Source: Octopus sinensis (lineage: Eukaryota). Taken from it: a DNA stretch of 64,000 bases. The notes below the pieces were generated by a model. It did not search any database. It saw nothing but the letters and a program-made list of their open reading frames with translations, and had not been told where the DNA came from. Below are positions 31,562 to 64,000 of this stretch, piece by piece. Positions within the stretch are counted from its first letter, which is position 1. Every line of letters begins with the position of its first letter. A program made the position numbers and the translations under genes. The stretch spans positions 94,426,001-94,490,000 of the forward strand of contig NC_043000.1 of NCBI RefSeq assembly GCF_006345805.1. The letters are read 5' to 3'.

Positions 31562-31568
31562 GTGTGTG

Positions 31569-31599
<31 letters not shown>

Positions 31600-31755: not shown

Positions 31756-31807
<52 letters not shown>

Positions 31808-37994: not shown

Positions 37995-38190
37995 TACATA
38001 GCGAGAGATTTTAGAGAAGGGTAAGTCGATTACATCGACCCCTATACCCGAGTGGTACTTCTTTTATCGATTTCGAAAGGATGAATAGAAAAGTCGACCT
38101 CAGTGAATTTGAACTCGGAACGTAAAGACAGACGAAATGCCGCAAAGCATTTAACCCGGAGTACTTACGATTCTTCCGCTACACCGCCTT
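37995..38190 (-). mobile_element. SINE family B (diverged)
   Basis: ttttatcgatttcgaaaggatgaa...tttgaactcggaacgtaaagac. Confidence 0.75.
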
Positions 38191-40228: not shown

Positions 40229-42891
40229 TTGAAATGATGAAGGTTTATCATATCCATTTCTGGGTGTAATATGTTATATATTACTCAACTGTACGTTATT
40301 TGTTGATCATTAGATACTTTTAGCGGGACCACTCCAGTGTAAGCTTTCCAGTTGGGTATCAAAGGCCGCAGAAGAACTGCCACAATCAAATGCTTGTCTC
40401 ATGTTGTTGAAAAGATCTCAATGTGGATATTGACAAAGAGAAATGGTCAATGAACCTAGTTATGGATTCCATTGGATATTTCCAGGAAATGTAAGGAAGA
40501 AGAGAACTTGTTCTTTCGGCGGTCATAGTTGCCTAGCGGGCATTGAAACACAGACCTGAGAACATAAGTTCACAAGGACGACCCAGGTACAAAACCCGCT
40601 GGAGACAGGATTTTGGAAAGCAGCAGGATACCTAGGAGTCATGACTTGGGTGGGCCTGGCTCCCGTAGAGTGTCAGGTATAAGGTCCGAAACACTTGTTG
40701 GATTGGAGTTCTTCCTCTGAAAATAACTCCTGTTGTGCGCTCGCAATTCAACGAGTTTCTGTTATTTTTGCTAGAAAAAGACGAATAGATCCCGCAGAAA
40801 TGACACCAAAACCAATGTTATAAAAAAAGACCGGGTGGTCACGGCTAGATCGTTTTTAACTATAATTATTCTTGATCTGTGTTTATCTAGGGCTAAACAA
40901 AAAAACAACTCGTGCGTTGCAGATTTTTTTTTCTTTTTGACCTATTTCTTATCTAGTGTCGAAAACCATAAGAAAAGTATCCATGGGTTTCGACCTGTTT
41001 TTTCCTATTAAGTAAAAAAAAACGAAATGATCGAGATCCTTTATTTAACACACTGACACGTTCTGCTATATTTATAAGCTGATATTGGTATATTTACTTC
41101 GATTTGTAAACACTTTGGTGTTTTAATTTTTGCTCTACTTTTGGTAATCCTAAACTATAAAGTATGAAGTGTTTTATTTTGATTCGAAGTTGATACTTTA
41201 ATATTTCTTGCCTTGTTCAATAATATACATATTTATTCTTAAGATGTTTCATCTGATTTGAATGTGAACATGTTACTTGTGGTTATATTTCTCCTTCGAA
41301 TGATGACTTCTCTCTTTCGACGATATGTGCTAACACACACATCTCAGTGACATAATGGACTCTCAAACACCAGCGTTTCAGCGTTATTGTATCTAATTAG
41401 TCAAAGTTGTCCCCGGATCTCTAAATCTAAACAAGATTGGTAGTTCTTGTTTATAGAATCTACCTGACCATAGGAATTTAATACTGACTTGGCAAACAAC
41501 AGCATGCATCAGCAAATGTCTTTTACTGAATTCCTTGTCGAAAACTGGTGCCTCCCAGTCTTCTACGTCATTTAAACGAGTATCTTATCAGCACACAATG
41601 GGAAGGAAGAAGTGGTTTTCCAAAGTTTAAATACAGCTGTATTAGCACATCCACGTTCAAATCTGACAGAACGAGTTAAGAATAAGCATGCAGATCTGTG
41701 TTTTGATACTCGCTGTCTCGAGTACTTGTAGAAATTTGATATTGTCTTTTCTTATCATTCTCTGCAGAATATTGTCTTTAGATTTTTATGGATATCCACA
41801 ATGGAAAATATTTGAAATACATCTACTTATATATTTTGACAATCAATGAAGTAATTTAATAGAATTGCGGCAGAGGTATACCAAGTTTTATGAAATGCTA
41901 CCATTCATGACAGACAGTATTGCAAAGTAGCATGTGTATTATGAATACCATACGAATTACTAGCCGTAAGTATGACAAAGAAGAGTTATCTTTCCTTGTG
42001 TCCACTGTGAGAAATAAAGCATGGTTTTCTCCGGTAGTTGTAATTTAAGCTAGAATAAGATGTGTTGTGAAGCCGTGACGGATTATTAACAGTAATTGTT
42101 AACATAAACCAGTTCTGCCTCTCTTTATTTTCACTGTACGCACTGTTACACTTGTTCAACTACTGATAGTACGGAATGTGTTGTTGGTGTTATAGTTAAA
42201 TTGATAGAGCAGTTAGACACAAACGCAAAAGACAAGGAGAGGATATACTGATAAAATGTATTTCTAGTAGATTTCGTTAGTCGAAAAATGGTTAAACGGG
42301 AATATTGTAAAGTATGTTTTTGAGAATAGTAATACTCTGAGTAATATTGAATAAAAATAATAAAAGTAACAATCGAAATTTGCTAAAAGGAAAGACCAGG
42401 TGTTAGAGTTCCTTTGTGATATGTAAATATTATCAAAAGTTTAATAAACAATCCCCAGAAATATTAATGGCCTACAGTTAAGAAAAAAAATTATCGTAAA
42501 TAGTTAAAGTACTTTATGAGAATAAGACCAGATTTGAACAGCTGATAATTCTTCACACACAAATACATTAAACAGCAAATCAAAATACCGTTTATTATTT
42601 ATTTTTACTTAAAACTGTGCACTTTTATCTTCCTCATTGAAATAAATAATCAATTGACGGAGGAGAAGGAAGAAGGAAGACAAGAAAGAGCGAGACTGTT
42701 TGAAAAATTGTATTTAAGGGTAAAATTAAAGTGACGTAGCTGAGAAAGCTCGAAGGAATAGATTGCAAGAAGATTCCAAAATCATTCTTTGAACATAGGT
42801 GATATGAATTTCTTACATAGATTTCTGATTCCACTGCTGGGTTGCCTGTTATTTGAAGCTAAAAATGCCGGTAAGTACGTGTTACTAATTA

Positions 42892-43302
42892 CACAGGGGA
42901 GCAATTGTGAACATAATTTCTGCCGAGTTTGAATTTTTCATCTGATTTAGACTAAAATTGGCATGCTGATTTCAAAACTGCAATCAGTTTTCTTCTATCA
43001 CGTCAAGATTTTTCTACAGTTTACTCTCTGAATAAGCACAATTGCATTATTTGTCTGTAAGCAGTAGAGATGATCAGCTGCTTTTATTATTTTATTGATA
43101 ACACTGGGGAACATTTTCGGAAAATTTTTTTAGTTGTCTTCCCTTTTATAATTAGTCCCGCCGAATATGATGGTGCTGTATTCAGAAATGCCTTGGGAAA
43201 TTTTCTGTCACATCAATTTTCTTTGTTAAACAGAAATTGATTTTTTTAACAAAAAATATCAATTTTGCCATTAAAATGCAATACTAAAATAACAATAACA
43301 AC

Positions 43303-43356
<54 letters not shown>

Positions 43357-44810
43357 CTAGCACAAACTAAATAGTACGTTTTACTGTTTATACAAAATGC
43401 TTAATTACACATATTAGGATAGATATTTCTGTCAAACTGGAGTTTCAGTAACTCAACGATTAAGCTTTCTCTTTGCTGCTTTGCGTGAATAAGTTGATCG
43501 ACAGTTTCTTTGCAGAGACTAACAGTATTCAGCCATCATGTTAATCTACTACCTGTCTTGATACCTCGTCTCTATCGTTTCGATGTCTTGGTGGAATCTT
43601 TCTCTTTGCTCATCATTTATTGCACCATGATTTTCAGGGAAGAAGTTCAGATGACTATGCAGGAAATGCACTTTACACTTGTGTTGCAGTCCAATGCTCT
43701 ACAGTTTCTTAACAGGTTCTACACAAGTTCTTCATAATTTGATGGTTTCCTGTTTCCCAGGAAATCAGACACAACTGCAGCAAAAGTATTCCACGCTTCT
43801 TTTCCAACGCTAGGAATGCTTTCCAAAAACTGATCGTCCTGCTATCTGTAGCCCGTCAAACACATCAACCATATTTTTATCACAATAAAAAGATAGAAAA
43901 TTTATGCTTAAGCATTTAAAACAGTCACTGTCTCAGTGTTTCATCACATATTTAACACACTATATGGAGTGCTCAAGCTTTGTCTTGATTACCCAGAAAG
44001 TAAGGTAAGCTTTTTTCACAAAATCTGGCTTTGTTTCGCTGGCAAGATAAAGTGTAACATTCGCAAACATAGCAGAAGACAATAGGGCTGTTTTTGCATT
44101 TTCTTCTCTTACAACTGTCCATATTTCTGAAATTCAAAACTTATATGCAGGCCAATTGTAACCTGCGAAAAGTATTTTCCCAATTGTCAACAGTTAAGGC
44201 AAAGTTCCTCAAAGAACATACATGCCATGAAGATTTTTCTACAATTCTTTGGTCATACTTGATTAAGTGACTTTCATCCATTTGACTTCACAAAACATCA
44301 ATTTTGTTAGAGATAGTTAAAGGTTCAACAAAACATATCTCACTTGCTTTACAAAAGCACAACGTGGACATATCTGCGGACAAATTCCACAAATATGAGA
44401 CATGTATGAAGGACTGTCTCATTGTATAAGGACTTTTGTGTTATCATCATGACATTTAAAATTGGTTAGATTGAAAATAAGGAAAGTTACTCATGTCTAA
44501 AGCTTTTTGTTTACACAAGATACTTAAATCCTGACTTTTTTTTTCACTTTTGTAGTTACATTTACATTAGATAATATTGAAAAACTTTTTTTAAAAATAC
44601 GTCAAGCTTCATACATGGATTTGTATTTGATAAAGCTAAGTCTATCCTTAGAAATGGTGACAATGCTGGAAATGTTGAAAACTGGACATTTGAATTTGTG
44701 AAAAATTTTGACATGATTGAGCAAAATGGATTTCACTTTTGAAACCAGCACTCAGAATTACTAGGAAACAAATCTGCAACATCAGACAACGTAAAACATA
44801 TTCGCCAGTG
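42892..44810 (-). mobile_element. Internally deleted Chapaev3-like (CMC superfamily) DNA transposon
   Basis: CAC(T/A)G termini with TTA on both sides (42889-42891 and 44811-44813). - strand remnants MDSCKRRKCKNSPIVFCYVCECYT...FVKKAY...GNQDKA and FLGNRKPSNY...HFLHSHLNFFPENHGAINDEQRERFHQDI...RYQ. Confidence 0.75.
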
Positions 44811-45514
44811 TTATATATCATTAGTAATATTGTGCATCGGTATAATGTTAGCTACCATCATTACTTGGTTTGGTTCTCACAGCTTTGGATTAAGGTTTGT
44901 AAATGCGCGGTTTGATTCGCACAGGTTTTAGATTAGGCTTAGTAAAAATTTATGCTTTTAGTAAAACCATTTCCAAGCAACAAGTATCTCGCGTATTTTA
45001 TAGGATTTTCTTTTCTTTTTTCGTTCTTTTAGAGTTTCGTTGAAGTATGGCCTTGTGTACTTTATTCGATTGCATTTGCTTTAACCATGAAACTAGACTT
45101 ATCTTGAATTTCATTTCTTTTGCATTTAATGTATTTGGTGCTACATTCATCGAAATGCATAATCTTACCAGTTTGAAATTTTGTTCCTTTCAAATTAATG
45201 TAACCTTTGAGTGGTTTATTCTGGCAAAATGAATACCAGAGGAACAAATATATTAGATGAGAGAAGACTCGTTTCCATAGATACGTCCATTTATATGGGG
45301 CACCAAGGTGTTAACCCGCACCTAAGAATCTGATATTACAAGATAAACGTAGATGGCTTTTGTCGATACGTTCTTTTGTATTGAGTTACATGTTGGTAAG
45401 CCATACATAAGAATCCGTTATCATTACAATATTAACGTTACCGAGAAGGATTATTTTAGCTTTGCACTAGAAACTGTGGACTTACTCAGAAAGCGATCTG
45501 GCAGTATACGTATA

Positions 45515-45741
45515 CTCTCTTTACTCTTTTACTTGTTTCAGTCATTTGACTGCGGCCATGCTGGAGCACCGCCTTTAGTCGGGCAAATCGACCCCGGGAC
45601 TTATTCTTTGTAAGCCTAGTACTTATTCTATCGGTCTCTCTTTTGCCGAACCGCTGAGTGACGGGGACGTAAACACACCAGCATCGGTTGTCAAGCAATG
45701 CTAGGGAGACAAACACAGACACACAAACACACACACACATA

Positions 45742-45782
<41 letters not shown>

Positions 45783-45948
45783 TACGACAGGCTTCTTTCA
45801 GTTTCCGTCTACCAAATCCACTCACAAGGCATTGGTCGGCCCGGGGCTATAGTAGAAGACACTTGCCCAAGGTGCCACGCAGTGGGACTGAACCCGGAAC
45901 GATGTGGTTGGTTAGCAAGCTACTTACCACACAGCCACTCCTGCGCCT
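45515..45948 (-). mobile_element. SINE family A (near-consensus)
   Basis: Complete head to tail. Confidence 0.9.
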
Positions 45949-46469
45949 ATGTACTTACATATATATATTCATGTGGGAATCTGCAATATTAATGGACAAT
46001 CTTTTGTCAAAGTATGACATTAAGAATACGGTGATAATGACATCTTAAGTAACTAGCACGGATATGCCAAATATTCCTAAGGGCAGATTTGACAAATTTA
46101 TGCGATAATTGATAATGGCTCACAATTTTGACGTTAGAGCTGATAAATAACGACTATCCCAGAAGGATTACGTTACTTGGAAGATTAAAACGTTCATTGT
46201 AAGATTAAATAGGGTTAAGAATGAGCTCTATTATTATAAGAGACGATATGCGCTGAACACTGTGTGACAAAAAGTTTTGTAATTATATTTATTTTTTTTG
46301 CTTGGTCAGTAAGTCTTACTTATTATTTGTTTCTATCTAGAAATCAAAGGAAATGATTGCTGTTACCTTAAAACTTTGCTTTTGTGACCTGGACAGCAAT
46401 GTTTTGAAACTGACCTATTTTCCATTACATTTCAAACAGATTCAGCACTGAGTTGCTGAAGCAGAAATA

Positions 46470-46640
46470 GCAAATATTCTGTTCAATACCAAAGATTTGC
46501 TTGTCAGTTATTTCACTCTAACCACTTAAACATGTCCCTTAGTGGCTGACAATATATGCACCTCTGGTCATGAGCAGGAGTAGTGGGGAACATCATAGCC
46601 ATGTGTTGAGAAGGATTCTTTGGGGTTTGAATAAGTGTAA
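46470..46640 (-). mobile_element. Fragment of the 27850-type repeat
   Basis: aatattctgttcaatacc...catcatagccatgtgttgag...ggggtttgaataa. Confidence 0.7.
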
Positions 46641-46954
46641 CAAGCGCGAAGTTTCAACGAAATATTGACCATTCTTCATACTTTCTATGAGTAAACAAAT
46701 AGAAATAACAGTTGCTGCTCAAGGATAGAAATCGTGTTACAGTGTATTTTCTCACATATAATAGTACTAATTTACTAATATCCTCACTGCATGTGCCGCT
46801 GAAAACCATTTTATGCGGATATTTATTAATGCCTACAGCCTGTATGATTACTCTAGTATTTTAATTGGGCTAAAGGAATATCAAGTGACCCTATTAACAA
46901 TCTTCTGCAATAGTCACCATCTGTTTTTGTTGGACAACTATTGCAAGTGTGAAT

Positions 46955-47190
46955 GCGTGTGGCCTAGTGATTAGGTTCTTGTACTCAAGGTCACTAGATC
47001 GTGCGTTTGATTCTCGGATAGCGCGTTCTTGAACAAAATACTTCGTTTACCATCGCTCTAGTCCCTCTTTCGATCAGACAAGAACGTTGGCTTGCTCGCC
47101 TTGCCAGCAGTGTGGCGTCTTTCAAAGGCTAAAACGAAGCAAAGAGCATTGTGACCTGCGATGTGTAACAACGTCTGATCACGTCACTGT
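46955..47190 (+). mobile_element. Diverged tRNA-derived SINE
   Basis: gtggcctagtgattagg A box, degenerate B box tttgattctc, ttgaacaaaatactt core. Confidence 0.55.
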
Positions 47191-47674
47191 ATAACAAAAA
47201 AATTGTGTGAAGTGTTAGAATATATGTCTACGTGCTGGCTGTGATGTTACATGCAACAACTGTCTTACTCTTTTAATTAAATACAAATAAATTAAAGATA
47301 CGTTGTTATCCCATATGGGAGGAAGATACTGGAGGCTGGTTATGTATCCTCGACGAGGATACAATAATACAATTTTGCCTTTGATTGCGTCAAGTTAGAG
47401 CACATCAATACGATAAGAGAGCAAGGCTGCATAGTACACTGAAGTACTTAGCTTCTTAATGTAATAACCTGTATGGAAATGCGAGCGTTTATGTGCACGC
47501 GTACATATAAGCACACACACATGCACACACACATGCACACACACATACATGTATGTATACATATACGTATGTATGTGTGTATGTATATGCGTTTATGTAT
47601 GTGTACATAAATGTGTCCCTATGCAAGCATACCTATTGTTATTATACATCAGTAAAAAAGAAAAGGTAGCGATC

Positions 47675-47860
47675 TGGCAGAATTGTTATAGCGTATAAGA
47701 AAAGACATTTGAAGCTTTTTTTTTTTACGGCTACGTTCTGAGTTCAAACGCCTTTGAGGTCAAGTTTTACACTTCATCTTTATGGGAACATAAAAATAAA
47801 GTTCCACTCAAGTATTTTAGAAGGTATCAACTACATCTCCTCCCCTGAAAATTGCTAGCT
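47675..47860 (+). mobile_element. Diverged SINE family B
   Basis: gatctggcagaattgtta...tacgttctgagttcaaa...gaggtcaa. Confidence 0.6.
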
Positions 47861-47946
47861 AAAGTAAGAATTATTATAATCGTATTTTTTTAATTTGCAA
47901 TTGTTACTTGTATTAATGCTAATGCTATCGTTTCTTTGCATTTCAG

Positions 47947-48103
47947 CGTCCACCAATGCGACAGAAGGTCAGACTGACTTCTACGCTAAAACATGCCAGT
48001 TCCCTCACATGGCACTTTTGAGAATATTTACGGGTAATAAAAGCCACATTTGTGGAGGAGCCCTTGTCGATGATATTCACATAATCACAGCAGCTCACTG
48101 CTT
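47947..48103 (+). CDS. Trypsin-fold (S1) serine protease homolog, His57 exon
   Basis: Acceptor tttctttgcatttcag and donor gtaagt at 48104, phase 1 to 2. Translates STNATEGQTDFYAKTCQFPHMALLRIFTGNKSHICGGALVDDIHIITAAHC, with the CGGAL and TAAHC motifs. Confidence 0.92.
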
Positions 48104-48379
48104 GTAAGTAATTATGAGTCGGTATATGTAATTAGATTTATTCACTTAAAAACTTTGATGTAAATAAAAGTCCAAAATTTATAAAGAGTGGGTTTATAAA
48201 GGGGGAATATAGGTTATATATGTTTCTTCACTAACTGGAGTTCATTATGTTAGTCATACGCAACGAACTCTCTACACAGTAGCTAGTCACACTGACGAGT
48301 GTTCGTTGCGTCAGAAATATTAGTCTATGTTTCACGTATTCCAATCCTTATAAATTCCCCACACGCTCACACACTCTGC

Positions 48380-48464
<85 letters not shown>

Positions 48465-48610
48465 TACGCACACACACACAGAGTTTAATGTACATATTAG
48501 CTAGTTATGGGCTATTAAACAATATCTCTCACCGGATGGTGTACTTTCATTGTTGATCTTTACCTTAACGAAAAAGTAAACTATACAAACACACACACAC
48601 AAACACACAC

Positions 48611-48694
<84 letters not shown>

Positions 48695-49044
48695 ATGTTT
48701 ATATGCCATCAAATGTAGCAATCCAATAAAGGACGATGTTACTCTTTTTTTGATTCCAGAAAAACATGTTTTCCAGCTGGCAATCCTCACACAGTTTGTG
48801 TCCGTATAGCATTTGTAAGGGAGGTCATCGCTCCCATCTCTAGCCTTACGTGATACTTACTGACCTAGGTTTCTGGATGTTATCCGTCCTCAGTCTCAGA
48901 CAACCAGTAGCTAGTAATGAAAGCTCTCTCCACTTGCAAATCCTATAAATTTTTTAAGCGACACAGTCTCTGATCGCGTACAGAGAAAAACAACTTGTTT
49001 TAAATATCTGAGCGAGAGATATACAGTAACAGTACCAGATAGTA

Positions 49045-49170
49045 ATGTTTATATGCCAACAGAATGTGACAGTCCCATAAAGGACGATGTTACTGTTGTA
49101 TGTAGTATTTGTAAAACAACAGTAACATCGTCCTGTATAGGACTGCCACATTCTGTTGGCATACAAACAT
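49045..49170. repeat. 55-bp-stem hairpin in intron
   Basis: Arms 49045-49099 and 49116-49170, 4 mismatches, 16-nt loop. A diverged partial arm copy lies at ~48692-48745. Confidence 0.95.
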
Positions 49171-49494
49171 AAATATCCGGTACTTAATTTGAAAACTTAA
49201 TATGATACATTAAAATAGCATTCAACATTTGGGCCCATAGAAATTTCATTGCAATACACAAGGAGTAACTACAATTTTGATAACGAACTTCTTTAAAGTT
49301 TAAACATACCACTAAGATGTTAACCTATTTAATAATGACCGCTTAAAAGTCTATTCCTTTGTGAAGTGTGATTGCTTGGGACCCTGACAGCTTTGAAAGT
49401 GAAGCGCAAGCTCCTGGTAAGGTTCCGATGCTGGACAGATCAAAGGATAGATGCCAGATTAATACTGGTTTCAAATATTGGCAAAAAGGCCAAC

Positions 49495-49680
49495 AATTTC
49501 AACTATAAGCACTCGGCCAGAAATTCTGGGGGAGAGGGCCAGTCAATAACATCGACTCCTGTGCTCAATTGGTACTTATTTTATCGACCCAGAGAGAGGA
49601 AAGGCAAAGTCAAAATCGGCGGAACTTGAGCTCAACGTAAAGACGGGCGAAATGCCGCTAAGTATATCTCCCACGGCGTT
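49495..49680 (-). mobile_element. SINE family B (diverged)
   Basis: ggtacttattttatcgaccc...aaggcaaagtc...acgtaaagacgggcgaaatgccgctaag. Confidence 0.7.
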
Positions 49681-50469
49681 AATGATGTAGTAGTTAATGA
49701 TGTAGTAGATTTCTTTAAGCAATAACTATTGTACTGTGATTAGCTGTCTTAGGAAAGGTTGTTTTAAGCAAGAAGGTTCGCTGTTTAAGCCTAACTTAGG
49801 CCTGATCGAGCAGACTTGTGACCAAAAGTATTCAACGGCTGGTGTCTCGTATTTTTTTGTATATATAGGACTACCCACCAAAATGAGAGATGAGTAACTC
49901 TAATTTTGATACGGCCGGATGTGATTTAAGAAGCACTGGAATACTGTTGTTAGCCGGGCTAACAGCCACGTTGTAGAAACTTACAAATCCTGTCACTCAC
50001 ATATACATCCAGAACATTCTTAAAAGAAAATTTTACGCACGTACACTCACACACATTTTTGAAAAGGGCACGTCAAAAGATATTGAACTGGCGTTTTAGT
50101 GTGCAGATCAGATTGAATACCTAAAATCCTTCGTTAATTGCGTGATAGGAAATGCAACCCAGGTAAATCGGTTATAGGAAATGCAGCAGTTATTGAAAAT
50201 AAAGAAGTCAGGCAATGATTGCAATATCAAAGTTTAAAATAACAGGTGTATCACTAATTGTAAACATCACCAAAAATGTAATACCGTGAAATCATAAACA
50301 AATTTAAGAGTAGAAAACAATTATAGATATATATGTAGAAATCCTTCCCCCTTGACGCTAATGATTTTATTTCTGATATCTTCGCTCTTTCTGATTTGCT
50401 TGCTACCCCTTCTGGCATTTTTAATTGTTCTTCTGCTATTATCTAAAATAATCCTTTCTACTGCAGGCA

Positions 50470-50658
50470 CCAGGCCTCAAATATGGTGGGAGGGAAATAG
50501 TCGATTACAGTGTTTTAGTGGCACTTAATTTATCGACCCCGAAAGGATGAAAAGCAAAGTCGACCTCGTCGAAATTTGAACTCAGAACGTAGCAACGGAC
50601 GAAAAGCCGCTAAGTATTTTACCCGGCGTATTAACGACTCTACCAGCTCGCGACCCTA
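50470..50658 (-). mobile_element. SINE family B
   Basis: acttaatttatcgaccccgaaaggatga...ccagctcgcgacc. Confidence 0.8.
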
Positions 50659-51659
50659 ATGGATTGGAGAAACGTGACTATTATCTAAAAAATAATTGGA
50701 ACCATATTAGCGAAAATAATACTAGTGATAGTAATATGCGTAGCAATCTTTTTGGGTGTTCTAATTATTACAACGAAAATATGGATATTAGTACCCGCCA
50801 TCCTTTTAAATTGTAATGTCTCATATTCACGTTAGTAATAATGGTAGTTTCAGAAGTCATAACATGAATAGCAGCATATTGAGTGGTGAGATATTTGTTC
50901 GCTCAATGTAAATACTAGTCAAACTATCTATACGAACATAAGAATAGGACTAACGTTAATTGTCATTTAATACAGGCTAAGAAACGAAACCCTAGAATAC
51001 CTATTAGGTGCCTGTTGCATGGTTATTGCTTATGGTATAACGTATTCTTTTAACGCAATGCACTTAGCAGACAATAAAATTCAGCTAAAATATGTATAGA
51101 GTCTTCCGTCGACTGTAAGAGTCGGTCATTATTTCGCATTAGCTCATTTTCTTCTACTAAGCACAAAACGTCTACTTCATTAGCTAATTATAAACACTGT
51201 TTTGCGAACAATAATAGCTTTAATATTACACGGACCATTTTTTAAAACGGCAAGGTCGTATTAACATAGTTGGCTTCCATGCGATCTTTATAGGAAAGAG
51301 TCCATCGGGATTTTTGATATAGAAGAGCCACCGTCTTCTGAATCTTCAGCGAGAAGCTGTCATTTCTTGCAGGAATCTGATTTGTAAAATATTTGTTTTC
51401 AACATAGATCGATATGTTCCACCTGGTTCAGCTAAATTATGGTTACATATACACCTGCAAAACGTATCTATAAATGTTTTGATACCACTGGCAACCACCA
51501 ATGTTTTGAGAAACAGAAAGAAGTGTTGCAAACATTGATTTGAATAAGGTGACGAAATGGTTATACTGCGTACAACAACAAATCTAAAAACTATATCACA
51601 ATTATAGAAATATTAATATTTCTAAGTCTCTCTAAAAGAGACAACGGCAGCGGTACTGG

Positions 51660-51985
51660 ATATTAATAGTTATCGCCAAGTTAATATGGAAGTCCAGAAA
51701 TATAGGACGAAGGCTGCCGTTGATTACCTCCAAGAGGCCATCGCCTCTAGCTAGCTATGTGACACACGAACCTGTGTCCATTATAAAGGGCAAATACCAT
51801 GAAACTAGTCTGCAGGTGCCTGACCAAGAGGAAGCGGCTGACTTCCCCTGTTCGAAGGTTATAATGGACACAGATTCGTGTGTCACATAGCTAGCTAGAG
51901 CCGATGGCCTCTTGGAGTTAATCAACGGCCGCATTCGTCCTATATTTCTGGACTGCCATATTAGCTTGGCGATAACTATTAATAT
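51660..51985. mobile_element. MITE-like inverted repeat (127-bp arms)
   Basis: Arms 51660-51786 and 51859-51985, 7 mismatches, AT-rich ends. Confidence 0.8.
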
Positions 51986-52189
51986 ATATCACAATTGTTT
52001 TAAATATTACTATTTTGACCATAAAAATTCACTATCAAGAAGAGAGAAATATGTATTAATAAGAAAGTAGGAACAAACTTTGATTTTATCTTCTCCTGTT
52101 AAACTGCATGTCCAATTCCATCAATCCTTTGTTTTCTTTCTCCTACTAAATCTTTCCTTCTAAAAATCCAGCCTAATTTTGGTTTCAAA

Positions 52190-52345
52190 TTTTGGCACAC
52201 GGCCAACAATTTTGGTGGGGGTGCATACGTCGATAACACCAACTCCAGTGCTCAACTGGTACTTACTTTGTCGACCCTGAAAGGACGAAAGATAAAATCA
52301 ACATCGGCGGCATTTAAACACTGAACGTACAGACGGACTAAATGC
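52190..52345 (-). mobile_element. SINE family B (diverged)
   Basis: tggtacttactttgtcgaccctgaaaggacgaaag...aacgtacagacgg. Confidence 0.65.
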
Positions 52346-52486
52346 AGAACGTACAGAAGACTCTGCAAACTCACAGCCTTACAATCCAAACTAAAAGAAA
52401 TTTCTTGCCACTTCGGACTCTTTCTCCAATGTTACTCCTACTACTCCTTCCCCACTTTCTCTCTCTATCTATCTATCTATCTCTCC

Positions 52487-52549
<63 letters not shown>

Positions 52550-53120
52550 GCTTTCTTTTGTCAATTACCCAACTAAAACCAAAAGCTTATATTTACTTAA
52601 GGAACGAATATATTAAATTTCCACCACAAGAAATAGAACCGCCCACATCGTTCTCAAAACAAACAATCCGAAGGAAAAACCCACACGTCAAGGTGTTACA
52701 TCAAGCAGGACAATTCTAGGTCGACGAGGTTAATGACCGGCAGACCTTCGTAGTAACAAATAATATAAATATAAAATTTTGAACAAGAAAAGCAAGGAAA
52801 TCGTTTATTGCTTCAGATTATCTCAAATTCTCATTTCACTACATCAAAAATTCATCTCGTATATTATATAATATAACTTCTATTGTCCTCTGCTTATATG
52901 TGTGTATGCGTGTACGAATGTATATATATATATATATATATACATGAGTGTGTGTGTGTATTATGCGCATACATACGTACACGCAGTTAAATAAGCAGAC
53001 ACGCACATATAACTACATGTACACACACACGCACGTAAATATAGTTTAAAGATCCAGTAGAGGTACAATCCACCAAAAAGTATTCCATCCAGTGAGAGAT
53101 AAATATCAATTTAAATGCAC

Positions 53121-53203
53121 AACCGAAAGAGCTACTAGTAGTTTCATGCTTGTATGGTACATGAACAGGCATGAAAGCATGAAACTACTAGTAGCTCTTT
53201 CGG

Positions 53204-53205
<2 letters not shown>
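53121..53205. repeat. Perfect 31-bp-stem hairpin
   Basis: aaccgaaagagctactagtagtttcatgctt / aagcatgaaactactagtagctctttcggtt with a 23-nt loop. Confidence 0.95.
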
Positions 53206-53253
<48 letters not shown>

Positions 53254-53492
53254 GTATATGTATATGTATATATATATATATGTATATGTATATATATATA
53301 TGTATATGTATTATATATATATGTATGTATATATATATATGTATATATATATGTATATGTATATATATATATGTATATGTATATATATATATTATATATA
53401 TATATATATGTATATATATACTATATGTATATATTATATACATATATGTATATGTATATATATATATATATGTATATATATATGTATATATA
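53206..53492. repeat. (TA)n/(TATG)n microsatellite
   Basis: Direct reading. Confidence 0.95.
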
Positions 53493-53590
53493 TAAACAAG
53501 AGGGTAGTAATATTATTTACTACCAGGTGCCCAGCACAAAAGACGAATTAGTCATAAGACAAAAATATTATTCATATAGAAAAATATATT

Positions 53591-54157
53591 CATGTAGTTA
53601 TACAATTAAGGGCTCCTAAATAAAGATGCCGAGTGCTGGGAACACAAAAGGGGATGAATTAATCGAGAGTGAAAATCAAAAACGTTTACCGATAACTTTA
53701 ACAATCGTACCGCGGTTTCTGCTTCTTTCTAGCAAAACACAGAATATGTTTGCTAAGGCCAGCTTCATCAGTGAGTTGCCTGAATTTATCGAGGTCTGCA
53801 GCGATGTGGGCTATACGTTAAACCCGACTACTAGCAGATCTTAACTTTTCAAATCTCTGCGCAGACGCAAAATTTACGCGGGCATGCCGGGAAGAATTTT
53901 ACGAATAAATTCATCATGTAGTATGCGAATATAAACAAGAAGGGTAGTAATATTTCGCTGCAGACCTCGATTAAATTCAGGCAACCACTGATGAAGCTGG
54001 CCTTAGCAAACATATTCTGTGTTTTGCTAGAAAGAAGCAGAACCGCGGTACGAGTTGTTAAAGTTATCGGTAACGTTTTGATTTTCATCTCGATTAATTC
54101 ATCCCCTTTTGTGTTCCCAGCACTCGGCATCTTTATTAGGAGCCTTAATTGTATAAC

Positions 54158-54163
<6 letters not shown>
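53591..54163. mobile_element. MITE-like fold-back element with ~210-bp arms
   Basis: Arms 53591-53804 and 53955-54163, a 150-bp spacer and TA-rich flanks. Explains the mirrored MPSAGNTKG ORFs. Confidence 0.8.
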
Positions 54164-54224
<61 letters not shown>

Positions 54225-54532
54225 GTATATGTATATATATGTATATGTATAGATATATATAGATATATATATGTATATGTATATATATGTGTATATATAT
54301 GTATATATATATGTATATGTATATATATATTATATGTATATGTATATATATGTATATGTATATATATATATATGTATATATATATATGTATATATATATA
54401 TATGTATATGTATATGTATATATATATATGTATATATATATGTATATGTATATATATGCATATATATATATAGTGTGTGTGTGTATGTATAATATATATA
54501 TGTATCTATATATATATACATATATGTCTATA

Positions 54533-54587
<55 letters not shown>

Positions 54588-54600
54588 TATATATATATGC
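54164..54600. repeat. (TA)n/(TATG)n microsatellite
   Basis: Direct reading. Confidence 0.95.
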
Positions 54601-54619
54601 ACACGCAGACAGACAACAA

Positions 54620-54980
54620 ACAGCCATGCTGGGGCATCGCCCTGAAGAATTTCTGGCCTGGAAAATCGACCCCAGGCTTAATTTTTTAAGACTAGCACTT
54701 ATTCTATTTTTTAAGACTAGTACTTGTTCCATTTTAAGACTAGTACTTATTCTATCGGTTACGCAAACATAAACGCAGCAACACCGGTTATCCAGCGGTG
54801 TTTGGGGACAAACACAGACACGCAGAAACGCATACATAGATACATACGTATATATACGACGATCTTCTTTGGGCGGCCTGAGGTTATAAATGGACGACAC
54901 TTGCGCAAAGTGCCACGTAGTGGGACTGAACCCAGAACTATGTTGTTAGGAAGCAAGCTTCTTATCACACAGCCACGCTA
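54620..54980 (-). mobile_element. SINE family A (diverged)
   Basis: gccatgctggggcatcgcc...gtgccacgtagtgggactgaaccc. Confidence 0.8.
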
Positions 54981-55068
54981 CATAAACACTCTCACACACT
55001 CACACATGTATGCAGATGTATGTATATATAGATATATCCTAAACGAATTTTCCGATTCTCTTTTCCAG

Positions 55069-55208
55069 TCCGAAAGGTTGGACATTCGTAGACGTCTCTC
55101 TCGGAGGAACTAATTCAAGTGTTGCAAAAGCTACTTTTCAAATTAACACGACTAAGGTGCATTTACATAAAGCCTTTAAAACGCTGAATTCCAGTTTCTT
55201 GTTATATG
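55069..55208 (+). CDS. Serine protease homolog, exon following His57
   Basis: Acceptor ttctcttttccag and donor gtaagc, phase 2 to 1. Translates (F)PKGWTFVDVSLGGTNSSVAKATFQINTTKVHLHKAFKTLNSSFLLY, matching the V.V.LG and HP.F-like segments, and joins its neighbours in frame. Confidence 0.85.
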
Positions 55209-55377
55209 GTAAGCCAGTATCCACTTTGTTTCCTGTTTAGTACTTGTTTAATACTTCCTGTTTGGTACTTCCTGTTTAGTACTTGTCTTAAATTGTATAG
55301 AACAGCTCGGTTAGTTTTATTTCTTTAAGGTTAATTTCAAACAGCAAAAAAACAAAAACCCAGAAAAATTATCAGAT

Positions 55378-55590
55378 ACTCTTTTACTTGTTTCAGTCAT
55401 TTGACTGCGGCCATGCTGGAGCACCGCCTTTAGTCGAGCAAATCAATCCCAGGACTTATTCTTTGTAAGCCTAGTACTTATTGTATCGGTCACTTTTTGC
55501 TGAACCGATAGGTTACGGGGACGTAAACACAGAAGCATCGGTTGTCAAGCAATGCTGGAGGGACAAACACCGACACATAAACATACACAC

Positions 55591-55655
<65 letters not shown>

Positions 55656-55850
55656 TATATATATATATATATAGAGATAGATAGATAGATATATATACAT
55701 ATACATATATACGATGGGCTTCTTTAACTTTTCGTCTACCAAATCCTCCACTCACAAGGCGTTGGTCAGCCCGAGGCTATATAGAAAACACTTGCCCAAG
55801 GTGCCTCGCAGTGGGACTGAACCCCGAACCACACAGCCACTCCTGCACCT
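55378..55850 (-). mobile_element. SINE family A
   Basis: Family A consensus filling most of the 698-bp intron. Confidence 0.85.
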
Positions 55851-55906
55851 ATGATGATTATAAGAACTACATCGTGGCTGATTTTTAAAAAACTTTCTCT
55901 TTTCAG

Positions 55907-56038
55907 AAAATGACGCTGCCTTTTTAGTTCTTCCACGACCTATTAATGCTAGTAAGTGCATCCGACCAATTACCATGGCAAAACACAACGATACATTTTA
56001 CTCATCATGTTTTATGGTCGGCTGGGAAATTAATTCCA
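55907..56038 (+). CDS. Serine protease homolog, Asp102 exon
   Basis: Acceptor ctttctcttttcag and donor gtaagt, phase 1 to 1. Translates (E)NDAAFLVLPRPINASKCIRPITMAKHNDTFYSSCFMVGWEINS, equivalent to NDIALL.L..P...IRPI and C..GW. Confidence 0.9.
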
Positions 56039-56598
56039 GTAAGTATCTTATTGTAACTTTTACTATCATGGACTAATATTAACCGACACGTCTCTTTATT
56101 CATTCAGCTCCAATGGCTACGGATCCGGTCAGAGTTACTATACAGAAAGGCATTATTCCATCAGTTCCTGAATGTGGTGTCAGTGAAAGCTGTACTAGTT
56201 TCCCAAATGAGATTGACCAAGAGGTAATAGGAGCGAGAGCAGGAAGAAAAATCAATAGCGATTTCATTTATTTCGCATAAAACATTGGATAAAATATTTT
56301 GCTGTGTAGCATTTGGAAAAAGAATATTGGCGAATTTAACGAAGGGAAGCCTTTATGTGGTTTCTTAATCTGCTAGAAATATCAGCAATGCATACTTTGG
56401 ATAACGTAGTCCTGATAAGCTATGTCCGAGTGAAGGAAGGAGATGTCATGACTGGAACGACTTTGGTCTGTTCAGTGAAGGGTGACCCGGATCAAGATAA
56501 AACAACAATGGCAACAACAATAACGACAACAACATAATCAGCAACAATAGCAATTGCAGACATTCTTGAAGAATGTTTTCAAACGTGACTTCGAATTG

Positions 56599-56830
56599 AA
56601 GGCACATAGCTTAGTGGTCAGTGTTGTACTCACGATTAAGAAATCGTGGGTTCGATTCCCAGGCCGGACGTTGCGTTGTGTTCATGAGCAAAACACTTCA
56701 TTTCACGTTGCCCTGCGAGCATTTCTCCATCTGACATGTGGCACACAGTACACCTGTACAGGTAATTTAGATTTGATGGAGTGAGTGAGCTTATGTGTAC
56801 AAAGCATTTGATCGCTATAAATAAATCATC
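56599..56830 (+). mobile_element. tRNA-derived SINE (additional family)
   Basis: ggcacatagcttagtgg A box, gggttcgattccc B box, ttcatgagcaaaacactt core. Confidence 0.7.
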
Positions 56831-56949
56831 AGTATGGTTGTTGGATAACCGGGAAACTGAATTTCCCAGCTACGGAGTTTTGTTTCGAGGGTCGTTTCTT
56901 TTCCAGATTATTTCCAGGTTATACTTTCAATTAATGTGACACCGAAATC

Positions 56950-57965
56950 ACGCGTAAACGGCTCCCACCCCCCACCCCCGAAAAGGAAATTGCCCTTACT
57001 TCTCCAACACCACCATCCTCACAGGCACCCATCATCGTCCCTATCATATCACTGACTCCTTCACTTGCACTTCTAGCAACGTCATTTACTGCATCTCCTG
57101 CTCTTTCTTCCCTTCTCTGTACATCGGTCAAACGGCACGCCGCATAGCTGACCGATTCGCGGAGTACCTCCGAGACGTTAGACTTGGCAATGATACCCTG
57201 GTCTCGTGCCATTTCCACTCTACAGATCATTCATTACAACACCTTTCTGTGTTCGGATTGTCTTTGCACAGAGGCAATCCGGACTCCTACCTTCGCCTTG
57301 AACGGGAATTAATCTTCTCCGCTCCTTTGTGCCGCATAAGCTCAACTCCCACCTCTTCATCCGACATCTACTCCCTCTCTTCACTCCTACCCACCTTCTT
57401 TCATCGATATCCCCTCCATCCACATCCCACCTCCACACATCCCACTCCCACAAAAACCTTCCCTGCCCTCACATACTCACCCCAAACCCAAACCCCACCC
57501 TCACATCCCCACATCCCAACACCGCCACCCTACCACACACAACCTCACACCATAACACACCATCCTGCCCCGATTACTTCCCAGCACCCACACCATCATC
57601 CACATACCCACACACTACAAACGCGCACACACACGCACACATCCACATGTCAAAGTCACCCACCCCTATCCACACGCACTCTTACACACTCACATACACA
57701 CGCACGCACACCTTCGTTTTCGGATCACTAATACTTTATTATCTCCCCTTCTTTCAAGCTCTTCTATTTAACTACTTTTGTCCAGCCAGTCACCATGATT
57801 GATCGCTAACTCCAAAAGTTTTTTGTTCTCTCCGTTTATTTCTTCGTGTTCCTTTCTGTTGAAGAGCTTAGGCTCGAAACGTAAAAGATTTCCTCACCTC
57901 CCGAACATCACATTAAAACACCTGCTTGTTGTTTATACACCTGTCTTCGTCTTTTCTGTACATTT
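56950..57965 (+). mobile_element. Penelope-like element 3' fragment (GIY-YIG endonuclease and hammerhead-like tail)
   Basis: Open frame from ~56991: CPYF...SFTCTSSNVIYCISC...LYIGQTARRIADRFAEY...CHF...LERELIF. The tail has cttt CTGTTGA A GAGC ttag GCTC GAAACGT A aaag at ~57853-57886. Confidence 0.85.
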
Positions 57966-57987
57966 CAGTTATATATACACACACACA

Positions 57988-58070
<83 letters not shown>

Positions 58071-58319
58071 TCATATATATATGTACATATATATACACAT
58101 ATATACACACACACGTATATATATATATATATATGTATATATATAACATTGTGGTTGAACTAATCCACATTCTCTCTCTCCCTCCTCCTCTCTTGCTCTT
58201 TATCTTATGTAGCTAACATTTTAAGCGTATAGCATACTAATGTACATAGGTAAAGTAATATAGACTTGTGTTTATAATTATAAATTTGAGAGGATGATTT
58301 GATTTTCCATACATCACAC

Positions 58320-58840
58320 TGTGACGTATCTGGCATATCATCAGTGATTTCTAGGGTTGTTGTGAAGGGGATCTTTCAACAATCAGACGTCCTCGCCCAG
58401 GTGGCCCAACTAGAGTTGATCAAGCCGTAGCTTCTGTCTAGTTAGTACTAATCCGAGTAGTTCTAGCCTGCTGATCTGCAGCCATCTTGACGCAACCTCT
58501 GCTATCTCCATACCTAACTCAATAGCCTCCTGCTAATGACTTTGTTGGTTGTACTCTCTCTAGGACTGGCCTACAATTTCTTGGCAAATCATTTGAATGG
58601 GATCACACCTTGCTCTGGCATAACTCCAGCAGTTCAGCATATTTCATACTCTTCTTCTCATTTACTTCTCAACGCAGGCCTTCCAGAGTACAAATAATTC
58701 TGACAAAACCATCAGACCAGATGTTTCTGGGATTAGTTTTAACTATGATGACGGGCAGCCGTTTCGGGGAACTGCCTCTTCAGACAGTTTATCAGCTCCC
58801 AAACGTGTCCTGTCTCCTTGTACATCACCATTGCTTATTA
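58320..58840 (-). mobile_element. Decayed RLE-type LINE 3' end (NeSL/HERO-like)
   Basis: - strand remnant VEEVNEKKSMKYAELLELCQSK-like, then a 3' UTR gggccacctgggcgaggacgtctgattgttgaaaga. Confidence 0.5.
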
Positions 58841-58901
58841 CTTAAGTAGTTAAAACTTCTTCCTCGTTGTCCATTAGCATTCTGCTACTTCAATGTTCTA
58901 G

Positions 58902-59047
58902 GTAAAGGAAACAATACTGCAGTACTGAAATGGGAGAATGTTAACGTACTTCCAGAAGCATCTTGTGGAGTTATTGCAACAAAATTCAGAAACAGACGTA
59001 TCTGCGCAAGTGATCTACATTTACATGGTGGAAAGCAAACGTGTCAG
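58902..59047 (+). CDS. Serine protease homolog, C168/C182/C191 exon
   Basis: Acceptor ttcaatgttctag and donor gttggt, phase 1 to 0. Translates (S)KGNNTAVLKWENVNVLPEASCGVIATKFRNRRICASDLHLHGGKQTCQ. The intron after CQ is at the classic trypsin-gene position. Confidence 0.9.
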
Positions 59048-59862
59048 GTTGGTGTCAGTTTTTTTTTATCTTCCTCTCCCCTTCAGAGGTTAATTCACTC
59101 TTCCTAGAAAACGATTTTAAAATGTTACAGATGTTTAAAGGATCATAATTTTACCCAATCAGAAGATAAAATTTGGAAGTTGTTATTTTGTGCATGATTG
59201 CATGTGTTGTCAACTGTAAACAAATGAAATACTGGCGGAATTCTGCTTTACACACGACATATAACCCCTCATAATTTTTCTTTTACTTTCTGGAATTTTT
59301 AGAAAATCTTTGCGAATTTCTATTCTACACACATTCATACGATTATGCAAAAATAAGAAAATTAAAAATTGGCTTGTTACTATAGAAACAGGCACCTATA
59401 TGTCTGGTTTTCGATTGGCTAAAATTTCCACAAATTTACAAAAAACCTATTAACTCTTTATTTATTGATTTATGGCGAAAAGGAATTTTATGGCAATAAT
59501 TACCATACAAAACTACACCAATACACCAGATATGAAATCAATTAGCACAAAAATTGAAGTAATTGAAAAGTGGCAGCCAAGCAGTAAAGACCCCAAAAAG
59601 AGTCTGATACCTAAATACTAGACTTAAAAATAATTACTTGGATCGGTTAGATCGACTGAGTAACTCATAGTCACGTGACGGAAACAAATGAAAGACTCCG
59701 CCCCAAAATATAAGAATAACGGGTTTCAGATAACGATATAGACACTCTACATCAAAACTGTAACCGCAATCAAATACATCGTTGAAACCTTTTTAATCTT
59801 CACCCAACTGCTTTATTAATCCAATTCAGTAATTACACATGTTCTTCATTTCATATCAACAG

Positions 59863-60000
59863 GGTGGCGAAGGAGGATCTTTGGTGTGTTTTAAAAAAGA
59901 TAAGAGAGCAGTTTTGGCTGGATTTACCTCTTCTGAAGCTGTCTGTCAACATGGCATATCAGTATGTAACAGAGTGGCGTATTTTTTCACAGAGAATTAA
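59863..60000 (+). CDS. Serine protease homolog, terminal exon (Ser195 replaced by Glu)
   Basis: Acceptor ttcatttcatatcaacag, phase 0. Translates GGEGGSLVCFKKDKRAVLAGFTSSEAVCQHGISVCNRVAYFFTEN*. GGEGGSLVC aligns to GDSGGPLVC. Confidence 0.88.
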   Translation, partial: GGEGGSLVCFKKDKRAVLAGFTSSEAVCQHGISVCNRVAYFFTEN

Positions 60001-60036: not shown

Positions 60037-60042
60037 AATAAA
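60037..60042 (+). promoter_or_regulatory. Candidate polyadenylation signal of the protease-homolog gene
   Basis: AATAAA 37 nt downstream of the stop codon at 59998-60000. Confidence 0.45.
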
Positions 60043-60116: not shown

Positions 60117-60520
60117 AAGGCGGCGAGCTGGGAGAAACGTTAGCCCGCTGGGCGAAATGCTTAACAGTATTTCGTCTGCCGCTACGTTCTGAGTTCAAAT
60201 TCCGCCGAGGTCGACTTTGCCTTTGATCCTTTCGGGGTCGATTAAATAAGTACCAGTTACGCACTGGGATCGATATAATCGACTTAAATCGTTTGTCTGT
60301 CCTTGTTTGTCCTCTCTGTGTTTAGCCCCTTGTGTGTAGTAAAGAAATAGGTATTTCGTCTGCCGTTACGTTCTGAGTTCAAATTCCGCCGAGGTCGAAT
60401 TTGCCTTTCATACTTTCGGGGCCGATAAATTAAGTATCAATTGCGTACTGGGGTCGATCTAATCAACTGGCCCCCTCCCCAAAAATTTCGGGCCTTGTAC
60501 CTAAAGTAGAAAATATTTCT
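60117..60520 (+). mobile_element. SINE family B, dimeric form
   Basis: Same two-unit structure as 17003-17370. Confidence 0.85.
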
Positions 60521-62810: not shown

Positions 62811-63067
62811 GTATTATGTATATGTACATATTCTCTATTAATAATATCTACTAATCTGTTGTAAATAAAGAATTAAGCGTCGTAAGAAATAGCCGCGAAC
62901 TGAAGACGAACCGGTTTTAAGCAACGTCCAAACCATTCAACATCTTGCATAACTCTTTGTACGCTCAACTCTTTGTACGCTCCGATTCTATTCTATTTTC
63001 CATATAATTTTTAGGCTTTCTTAAAATTGTATGCTTTAATATTCTTTGTATCTTGTTTCAATAACTA

Positions 63068-63309
63068 TTTACTCTTTTACTTGTTTCAGTCATTTGACTG
63101 TGGCCATGCTGGAGCACCACCTTTAGTCGAAGAAATCGACCCCATAACTTAATCTTTGTAAGCCTAGTGCTTATTCTATCGGTTTCTTTCACCGAACCCC
63201 TAAGTTACGGGGACGTAAACACACCAGCATCGGTTGTCAAGCGATGTTGGGGGACACAGAAACACAAACATACACACACACACATACATATGTACAGACA
63301 CACACACAC

Positions 63310-63348
<39 letters not shown>

Positions 63349-63490
63349 CGACGGGCTTCTTTCAGTTTCCGTCTACCAAATCCATCCGAGGCTTTAGTAG
63401 AAGACATTTGACTACGGTGCTACGCAGTGGGAATGAAACCGGAACCATGTGGTTGGTAAGAAAGCTACTTACCACACAGCCACTCCTACA
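63068..63490 (-). mobile_element. SINE family A
   Basis: Family A consensus. Confidence 0.85.
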
Positions 63491-64000
63491 CCTATTTTAT
63501 TTTTTTTTATCATATCCTTCAATGAATGAATTTTTTGTCAAGCAAAACCAAATTTTCACCCTCGCACAGATATCGATGACACAGTCTGGCTCTGCGCAGA
63601 ACTGATCTGCAACATTAGAGTTGACAGCGCCAGCTGGCAACAAATTTGTATTTCATGTCGTCCTAGTTACCTTGGACAACTGTATTCTGGGGGACAGCAA
63701 GGTTTTCAGCTACTCAATCGGCTACATCTGACTACAGTTGCTGGGTCCGGTGCCCCATTAAAATAACCCTCTTCAGATATGAAGGATGCAAATCTTGGAC
63801 GCGACGTGCTACGACACGTTCTCCGACTCCAGCCTTCTCACATCAGCTGCTAACCCAGGTATCGACGCCCCTAATTCAAAAGAGAAATTAAAACAAATAT
63901 AGAGGTCCGACCGGCTGCTTTCATTTTGTGCCAGTCACCGTCGAGACCTCAGATGTCTCCAGACTCCGCACTGTTGAGATCTCCGGAAACCCGAGCTAAG

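Follow-up and report, generated by a model that had tools for sequence, protein, structure and literature searches.

Catalytically inactive homologs of the serine proteases of family S1 are common in animals, and finding one more is in itself unsurprising. The present study concerns a stretch of 64,000 nucleotides of the Octopus sinensis genome (NCBI RefSeq assembly GCF_006345805.1, contig NC_043000.1, positions 94,426,001 to 94,490,000 of the forward strand), called the window below and numbered from its first letter, and an S1 gene that lies in it at 42804-60000 on the plus strand. We consider it probable that this six-exon gene encodes a secreted, single-domain, cephalopod-specific member of family S1 that has turned into a non-catalytic protease homolog and that most likely acts by binding. 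An earlier interpretation made from the letters of the window alone (the sequence-only reading) had proposed a maintained pseudo-enzyme at this place, and the present analysis followed it up.

The closest described proteins are the S1 peptidases of cephalopods, a large cephalopod-specific clade of which dominates expression in the posterior salivary gland and is functionally unassayed (Whitelaw et al. 2020, PMC7656900). Like them, the octopus protein is predicted to be secreted and has a single domain, a length in the range of about 255-275 amino acids (aa) and the same cysteine framework, including the motifs C-[EQ]-F-P and C-I-x-P; one checked paralog also has six coding exons. It differs from them in that GDSGG, GWG, I-V-x-G and the full C-terminal helix are all lost in its orthogroup.

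Inactive S1 proteins of the scabies mite, the SMIPP-S, include some that inhibit host complement (PMC4930577). These secreted S1-fold proteins have mutated triads, their genes have been kept, and they work through binding; the octopus protein would resemble them in these respects. The SMIPP-S nevertheless form a large and recent multigene family with varied triad mutations, whereas the octopus protein belongs to a single-copy orthogroup with one fixed pattern, and the two are unrelated beyond family S1.

Arthropod serine-protease homologs usually keep the catalytic His and Asp and have only Ser195 replaced, by Gly; they usually carry a clip domain and need proteolytic cleavage. These non-catalytic S1 proteins serve as cofactors or competitors in protease cascades, a mode of action that may extend to the octopus protein, and an example from the venom of the parasitoid Cotesia rubecula, Vn50, blocks host melanisation (PMC3091792). 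The octopus protein has in contrast a Trypsin domain only, with about 12 residues between the signal peptide and the protease-like domain and hence no clip domain, shows no cleavage or activation site, and is acidic at position 195.

Among vertebrate proteins, azurocidin (HBP), haptoglobin, the HGF beta-chain and protein Z are glycosylated, secreted trypsin-fold binders, and the octopus protein would be similar, its glycosylation being predicted. It is general background that azurocidin and haptoglobin lose His57 and keep the Ile16-type N-terminus and Asp194. The sequence-only reading had drawn a parallel with these two, which is a loose one: the octopus pattern is the reverse, since His57 and Asp102 are kept and Asp194, the N-terminus and Ser195 are lost. 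Factor IX shares the S1 domain, and factor IXa heavy chains in the PDB match at E ~1e-16; the octopus protein, however, has 259 aa, lacks Gla and EGF domains as well as the catalytic Ser, and resembles kallikrein or trypsin at least as much as it does factor IX. An identity with factor IX or trypsin-2, names that appear in RefSeq, was rejected, as these are similarity labels and not statements of orthology.

Gene model, fold and altered active site

The coding sequence comprises 780 nucleotides in six exons and encodes 259 aa. An exact-sequence look-up found the spliced product to be identical, letter for letter, to XP_029635811.1, "coagulation factor IX [Octopus sinensis]". RefSeq already holds the gene, under a misleading automated name, so that it is not hidden as had been claimed. 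The same 90% cluster also contains O. bimaculoides XP_014791103.1 and O. vulgaris CAI9721239.1. The features of the gene are as follows.

42674-42803, plus strand: proximal upstream region and 5' untranslated region, with a TATA-like TATTTAAG near 42711
42804-42870, plus strand: coding exon 1, start codon and predicted signal peptide MNFLHRFLIPLLGCLLFEAKNA (plus one g), ending in phase 1 at the donor G/GTAAGT
47947-48103, plus strand: coding exon 2, with GQTD in place of I-V-x-G, a C-Q-F-P motif and the His57 motif TAAHC (48087-48101; His codon 48096-48098)
55069-55208, plus strand: coding exon 3, with three N-X-S/T sequons (NSS, NTT, NSS)
55907-56038, plus strand: coding exon 4, with the Asp102 motif NDAAF (55909-55923; Asp codon 55912-55914) and with GWE where the paralogs have GWG
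58902-59047, plus strand: coding exon 5, with the fast-evolving surface loop PEASCGVIATKFRNRR and Gln at position 189
59863-60000, plus strand: coding exon 6, with GGEGGS (59863-59880; the Glu at the Ser195 position is codon 59869-59871), Ser215/Glu216, a Cys at 228, a truncated C-terminal helix (YFFTEN) and the stop codon TAA (59998-60000)
60037-60042, plus strand: putative polyadenylation signal AATAAA, 37 nucleotides 3' of the stop, conserved in O. sinensis, O. vulgaris and O. bimaculoides

All splice sites are canonical: the introns begin with GT, in most cases GTAAGT, and end with AG, and the exon phases fit together. Exons 2 to 6 join in phase exactly as the sequence-only reading had described, and the three catalytic motifs lie where it had placed them; what it had seen is real and lies well outside chance. 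Its beginning of the gene has to be revised. The five-exon version gives a 744-nucleotide frame of 247 aa (236-247 aa had been proposed) from an ATG at 47916, which lies in intron 1, upstream of the acceptor at 47946/47947. This start codon was ruled out: the closest database protein, "trypsin-2 [Octopus bimaculoides]", also of 259 aa, has another and longer N-terminus, the first 22 residues of which (MNFLHRFLIPLLGCLLFEAKNA) were found by tblastn to be identical, 22 out of 22, at 42804-42869, and a good acceptor, tttctttgcatttcag, is present at 47946/47947 (cag/CG, 47944-47946/47947), where joining from 42870 preserves the frame. The exon thus added supports the secretion that had been proposed without it. 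Judged by eye, its product has the parts of a signal peptide, namely an n-region with H/R, a hydrophobic core and an AKNA c-region. The 130 bp upstream of the ATG, a putative promoter, show 5 differences from O. bimaculoides (~96% identity, against ~92% for the introns) and are identical in O. vulgaris.

No second S1 gene was detected by tblastn in the window, nor within 10 kb of the gene in three other genomes, and the gene is a dispersed singleton that stands outside any tandem cluster here.

The deposited O. vulgaris model CAI9721239.1 begins in an alternative upstream exon, MCIMNTIRITS, which is 100% identical at 41932-41964 (plus strand) of the window, some 870 bp before the signal-peptide exon. 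It leaves the last exon through an internal donor, TCA/GTATGT (59961/59962), towards a next exon about 12 kb downstream, beyond the window. If real, such an isoform would have neither the signal peptide nor the last beta-strands; the model may also be an annotation artefact.

A search against Pfam matched the five-exon model to Trypsin (PF00089) over residues 26-243, with E=8.8e-30 and 104.6 bits (cut-off 20.6), and to no other domain, in agreement with the fold initially proposed. Sequence matches in the PDB were ordinary S1 proteases (kallikrein, trypsin, factor IXa). A structure was predicted with AlphaFold2 for the O. bimaculoides ortholog, which is 89.6% identical, from a 44-sequence alignment. 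The model reached a predicted local distance difference test (pLDDT) of 84 and a predicted template modelling score (pTM) of 0.81; the signal peptide and the N-terminal extension were of low confidence, and the lowest internal confidence (pLDDT 66-71) was found for residues 201-220, the loop that holds the former active site. The best Foldseek matches in the PDB were elastase, plasma kallikrein and uPA (E ~1e-14, TM ~0.7). By profile and by predicted fold, the protein is a member of family S1.

The catalytic and activation residues were compared with those of 15 active cephalopod paralogs, using chymotrypsin numbering and the alignment columns conserved in at least 70% of them. The departures specific to the orthogroup, which comprises the genes of O. 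sinensis, O. vulgaris, O. bimaculoides and Argonauta hians, fall almost all at the following positions.

Positions 16, 17 and 19: I, V and G in the paralogs; G/S/R, Q/P and D/R in the orthogroup
Position 142: G in the paralogs; E in the orthogroup (Asp in Argonauta)
Position 194: D in the paralogs; G in the orthogroup
Position 195: S in the paralogs; Glu in the three Octopus species and Asp in Argonauta
Position 198: P in the paralogs; S in the orthogroup
Position 216: G in the paralogs; E in the orthogroup (Pro in Argonauta)
C-terminal W-I: present in the paralogs; missing in the orthogroup, with a shortened helix

All 15 paralogs have GWG, 14 have GDSGG (the other GDPGG), and most have I-V-x-G and the C-terminal ...DWI helix. 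The I-V-x-G residues are conserved in at least 73-93% of them; the N-terminus reads G/S-Q-T-D in Octopus and R-P-S-R in Argonauta, confirming the earlier remark that no I/V-V-G-G N-terminus is present. Asp194 is 100% conserved among the aligned paralogs and is Gly in the orthogroup. Position 195 lies in an ungapped C-x-G-x-x-G-G-x-L-x-C frame, the active-site stretch being C-Q-G-G-E-G-G-S in all three Octopus species and C-Y-G-G-D-A-G-S in Argonauta. Trp215 is replaced by Ser in the orthogroup. Gln189, Glu216 and Ser226, as given by the sequence-only reading, are right for O. sinensis; position 189 is, however, Gln, Glu or Lys depending on the species, and therefore no S1 specificity appears to be preserved.

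Invariant in the same alignment are His57, Asp102, Gly193 and the disulfide cysteines: C58/C74, C156/C223, C187/C200 and C213/C242 occupy the invariant columns for the pairs 42-58, 136-201, 168-182 and 191-220, their pairing being predicted. The protein thus has His and Asp of the triad with Ser195 replaced, and neither the Ile16-type N-terminus nor Asp194 of the activation apparatus. From these residues we infer that it is not a working serine protease and cannot be activated as a zymogen.

An additional cysteine was observed at residue 249 (codon 59965-59967, TGT), where the orthogroup, including Argonauta, has Cys in place of the buried Tyr/Phe228 of the active paralogs. It is the eleventh cysteine of the mature protein and has no partner by homology; its thiol might be buried and free, or might serve for covalent pairing.

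The nine N-X-S/T sequons that had been counted are all present, against 2.5 expected from composition (Poisson P=0.001). Seven of them occur in each of the three Octopus species, two are absent from O. vulgaris, and O. bimaculoides carries a further one. The Argonauta protein contains only three sequons, all at positions other than those in Octopus, and the 15 aligned paralogs have 0-7, mostly 0-4, so that the enrichment is derived in the Octopus lineage and not orthogroup-wide. Heavy glycosylation, as previously proposed, is therefore an Octopus-specific feature and one predicted from the sequons.

Orthologs and selection

The coding sequences of the O. bimaculoides, O. vulgaris and A. hians orthologs were rebuilt from their genomic loci. 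Exon lengths in O. bimaculoides (67, 157, 140, 132, 146 and 138 nucleotides) are the same as in O. sinensis, all six exons are intact with their splice sites in the O. vulgaris genome, and the Argonauta gene, annotated "coagulation factor IX-like" and 51% identical, has the same six-exon layout with lengths of 70, 157, 158, 135, 131 and 138. When 5.8 billion proteins were searched with a profile, the Octopus cluster and Argonauta were the only orthologs recovered, with a drop in score from 471 to 111 bits at the first match past them; none came from squid, cuttlefish or other octopods, an absence that may depend on the choice of proteomes in the databases. The O. bimaculoides ortholog was also compared exhaustively, by phmmer, with 1.84 billion representative sequences, and all non-orthologous relatives had at most 37% identity. 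The best single-domain ones with a source name were Octopus, Argonauta and Sepia proteins, among them the "S1 type peptidase" of O. kaurna and Sepia latimanus and chymotrypsin-1-like and TMPRSS12-like genes of Octopus and Argonauta, and some of the nearest relatives come from posterior-salivary-gland libraries. A neighbour-joining tree grouped the orthogroup with 100% bootstrap and put three cephalopod paralogs next to it (60%); support for a single node of all cephalopod sequences was negligible, and the deep nodes were unsupported. The orthogroup is single-copy in octopods as far as these searches indicate, and its dead motif is older than the split between Octopus and Argonauta, for which the separation of Octopodidae and Argonautidae was taken from taxonomy records.

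Between Octopus and Argonauta, the non-synonymous substitution rate (dN) was ~0.37 and the synonymous rate (dS) was saturated at 1.5-3.2, giving a ratio (omega) of 0.11-0.25 by maximum likelihood (ML) and LWL85. The NG86 and YN00 values of dS are unusable here through saturation, and the ML and LWL85 omegas are upper-bound-type estimates. An open six-exon frame that outlasts a saturated dS excludes a pseudogene.

O. sinensis and O. bimaculoides differ at 38 of 777 coding positions (4.9%), without a single indel. Twenty-nine of the changes are non-synonymous and 9 synonymous, 27 codons having an amino-acid change (dN 0.050, dS 0.046-0.059); the low dS within Octopus rests on about 9 changes and is imprecise. 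For the introns of the same gene, with 7,864 aligned sites, the two species mismatch at 7.6% and have 7.4 gap openings per kb. Under neutrality at the intron rates, 38 or fewer differences have a probability of 0.0016 and the absence of indels, where 5.75 were expected, one of 0.003. Only 2.3% of neutral-substitution simulations kept the frame, the start, the stop and the ten splice dinucleotides, and the joint neutral probability of the pattern seen between the two species is ~1e-4 or less.

The replacements are also placed non-randomly. The 27 variable domain residues fall in poorly conserved paralog columns, with a mean conservation of 0.31 versus 0.50 (Mann-Whitney p=9e-5; Fisher p 3e-4 to 8e-3), and the fast loops, at residues 184-196, 211-212 and 225-230, surround the former substrate cleft. 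We read this as a constrained structural core with surface loops that drift at about the neutral rate. Protein identity between O. sinensis and O. bimaculoides (89.6%) falls between the extremes of three paralogs with an intact catalytic site (83.9-93.4%), and dN (0.05) is half that of an active control pair, the paralogs P0170 and P0172 (0.10); this pair is a rough yardstick, as its dS of 0.21-0.28 exceeds the intron divergence found here and the two may not be strict 1:1 orthologs. These coding comparisons demonstrate purifying selection on the predicted structural core since before the Octopus-Argonauta split. The open frame in four octopod genomes, the deep dN/dS, the smaller number of changes than in the introns and the placement of the replacements all agree with the initial proposal of a maintained, non-catalytic S1 homolog rather than a decaying pseudogene.

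Other sequences in the window

No other credible host gene was seen at 1-42000. Ten other long open frames of the window were searched against Pfam and gave no credible matches. One of them is a 257-aa stop-free frame at 56958-57728 (plus strand), in intron 4, the N-terminal part of which resembles a GIY-YIG nuclease motif (C..C...YIGQTARRIADRFAEY), followed by a low-complexity tract rich in Pro, Thr and His; the local GC content is 0.44 against ~0.35 elsewhere. This suggests a remnant of a Penelope-like or other transposon. Three frames on the plus strand, at 20119-20520, 27077-27382 and 37350-37652, resemble the C-terminal parts of ORF2 proteins of non-LTR (long terminal repeat) retrotransposons, with patterns such as ...LIDI..P.D.N...KY.DLE.E..KMW..K...IPVVIGALG... 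and without a Pfam match, and are probably degraded fragments of long interspersed nuclear elements.

Two families of interspersed repeats were observed. The first, similar to short interspersed nuclear elements (SINE), is about 130-150 bp long and has 11 copies of 72-78% identity on both strands, several of them in the introns of the S1 gene and just downstream of it. The second is about 400-450 bp long and has 14 copies or fragments of 74-88% identity, and it is present in introns 1 and 3 of the gene. Intron 2 contains long microsatellite tracts of the TA/CA and CT/GA types, which account for the many YIYIYI, CVCVCV and SLSLSL "ORFs" in the list of open reading frames.

SINE-like copies, both strands (examples): 649-795, 10071-10206, 17033-17163, 28357-28496, 38018-38150, 49440-49700, 50501-50617, 60149-60284
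Second repeat family: 2185-2571, 15463-15779, 28711-29100, 31246-31777, 45353-46045, 55377-55829, 63065-63495
Microsatellites of intron 2: 48350-48680, 53190-53500, 54150-54640

Possible function and rival explanations

The catalytic and activation machinery has been selectively dismantled while the fold, the paired cysteines, His57 and Asp102 were kept. In the mechanism that we propose, a protein without Ser195 and without the Ile16-type N-terminus should form no acyl-enzyme and undergo no zymogen activation. By analogy with the arthropod homologs, the SMIPP-S and Vn50, it would most likely be an extracellular binder, used as a glycan-decorated scaffold, a decoy or a cofactor, and its ligand might be a protease, a protease inhibitor or another molecule.

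Several points weigh against this interpretation. The loss of activity is read from residues, the binding mechanism is an analogy, and both the glycosylation of the sequons and the cleavage of the signal peptide are predictions. None of the sequences of the orthogroup in the protein collection comes from Logan (RNA-seq assembly), whereas active paralogs have Logan members. No paper mentions any of six accessions of the four orthologs, and nothing specific on inactive serine proteases or pseudo-proteases of cephalopods came out of the literature searches. Within Octopus, omega is 0.75-1.1 when O. sinensis or O. vulgaris is compared with O. bimaculoides, which is neutral-looking by that test alone, and 1.4-1.7 between O. 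sinensis and O. vulgaris, where there are only 6 differences, 5 of them non-synonymous; the active-paralog control pair has an omega of ~0.33-0.48. The sequence-only reading had named a dN/dS near 1 among orthologs as what would speak for decay. The ratio within Octopus is formally of that size, but the other tests show non-neutral evolution.

These observations could be explained by a recently relaxed relic, a pseudo-protease that was functional in the octopod ancestor, is now under little or no selection within Octopus and drifts towards pseudogenisation. The 29 non-synonymous and 9 synonymous changes correspond to the neutral expectation behind the near-unity omega, O. sinensis and O. vulgaris differ by 5 amino acids where each of two active paralogs differs by one, sequons have been gained and lost between species, and the missing RNA-seq-derived sequences would fit as well. 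We regard such a relic as unlikely nonetheless, as the coding part of the gene has diverged significantly less than the introns and is free of indels, three species retain every start and stop and all 10 splice dinucleotides, the replacements spare conserved columns, dN is lower than in the active pair, and the proximal upstream region and the polyadenylation signal are conserved. An unprocessed pseudogene or an annotation artefact, in which the remnants of a dead S1 gene would be open by chance, could likewise appeal to the lost catalytic Ser, the within-genus dN/dS of about 1 and the lack of expression evidence. It is extremely improbable: none of the four genomes has a disrupted frame or splice dinucleotide, the six-exon frame persists in Argonauta at a dS of at least 1.5 as well as in three Octopus genomes, the joint neutral probability effectively refutes it, and the sequence differences exclude that the four genome models are copies of one another.

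That the protein is still an enzyme, a non-canonical hydrolase in which His57, Asp102 and the acidic residue 195 form a retooled catalytic or metal-binding site, seems very unlikely to us. His57 and Asp102 are invariant in the four species, position 195 is always acidic (Glu or Asp) and Gly193 is kept, as this would require; but His and Asp are likewise retained in many S1 homologs known to be inactive. Moreover, Asp194 and the inserted N-terminus, on which the architecture of the oxyanion hole and S1 depends, are both lost, the replacements of Gly216 by Glu or Pro and of Trp215 by Ser would remove the substrate-docking strand, position 189 varies freely, and the active-site loop is the least confident internal segment of the model. 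A broader proposal is that the acidic residue 195 makes with His57 and Asp102 a new metal- or ligand-binding or non-canonical catalytic centre, never zymogen-activated and cloaked by N-glycans in Octopus, and thus an octopod-specific innovation on a venom-type S1 scaffold. This is quite unlikely in our opinion; one possible role would be that of a decoy in saliva or haemolymph, capturing protease inhibitors of prey or pathogens.

We therefore retain a secreted non-catalytic homolog acting by binding as the preferred explanation. A role in venom, which had been suggested among others, is possible but unsupported, and a low-abundance or rarely sampled site of expression is equally likely. The gene model was already public, and what is new is the recognition of a conserved pseudo-protease within the cephalopod venom-type clade. 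Names such as "coagulation factor IX", "trypsin-2" and "S1 type peptidase" mislead, and counts of "serine proteases" in octopus venoms and genomes may include non-enzymes. The gene offers a clean case for studying what the trypsin fold does after the loss of its activation and catalytic machinery. As a conserved, disabled, single-copy member, it would show that part of the cephalopod S1 family works without proteolysis.

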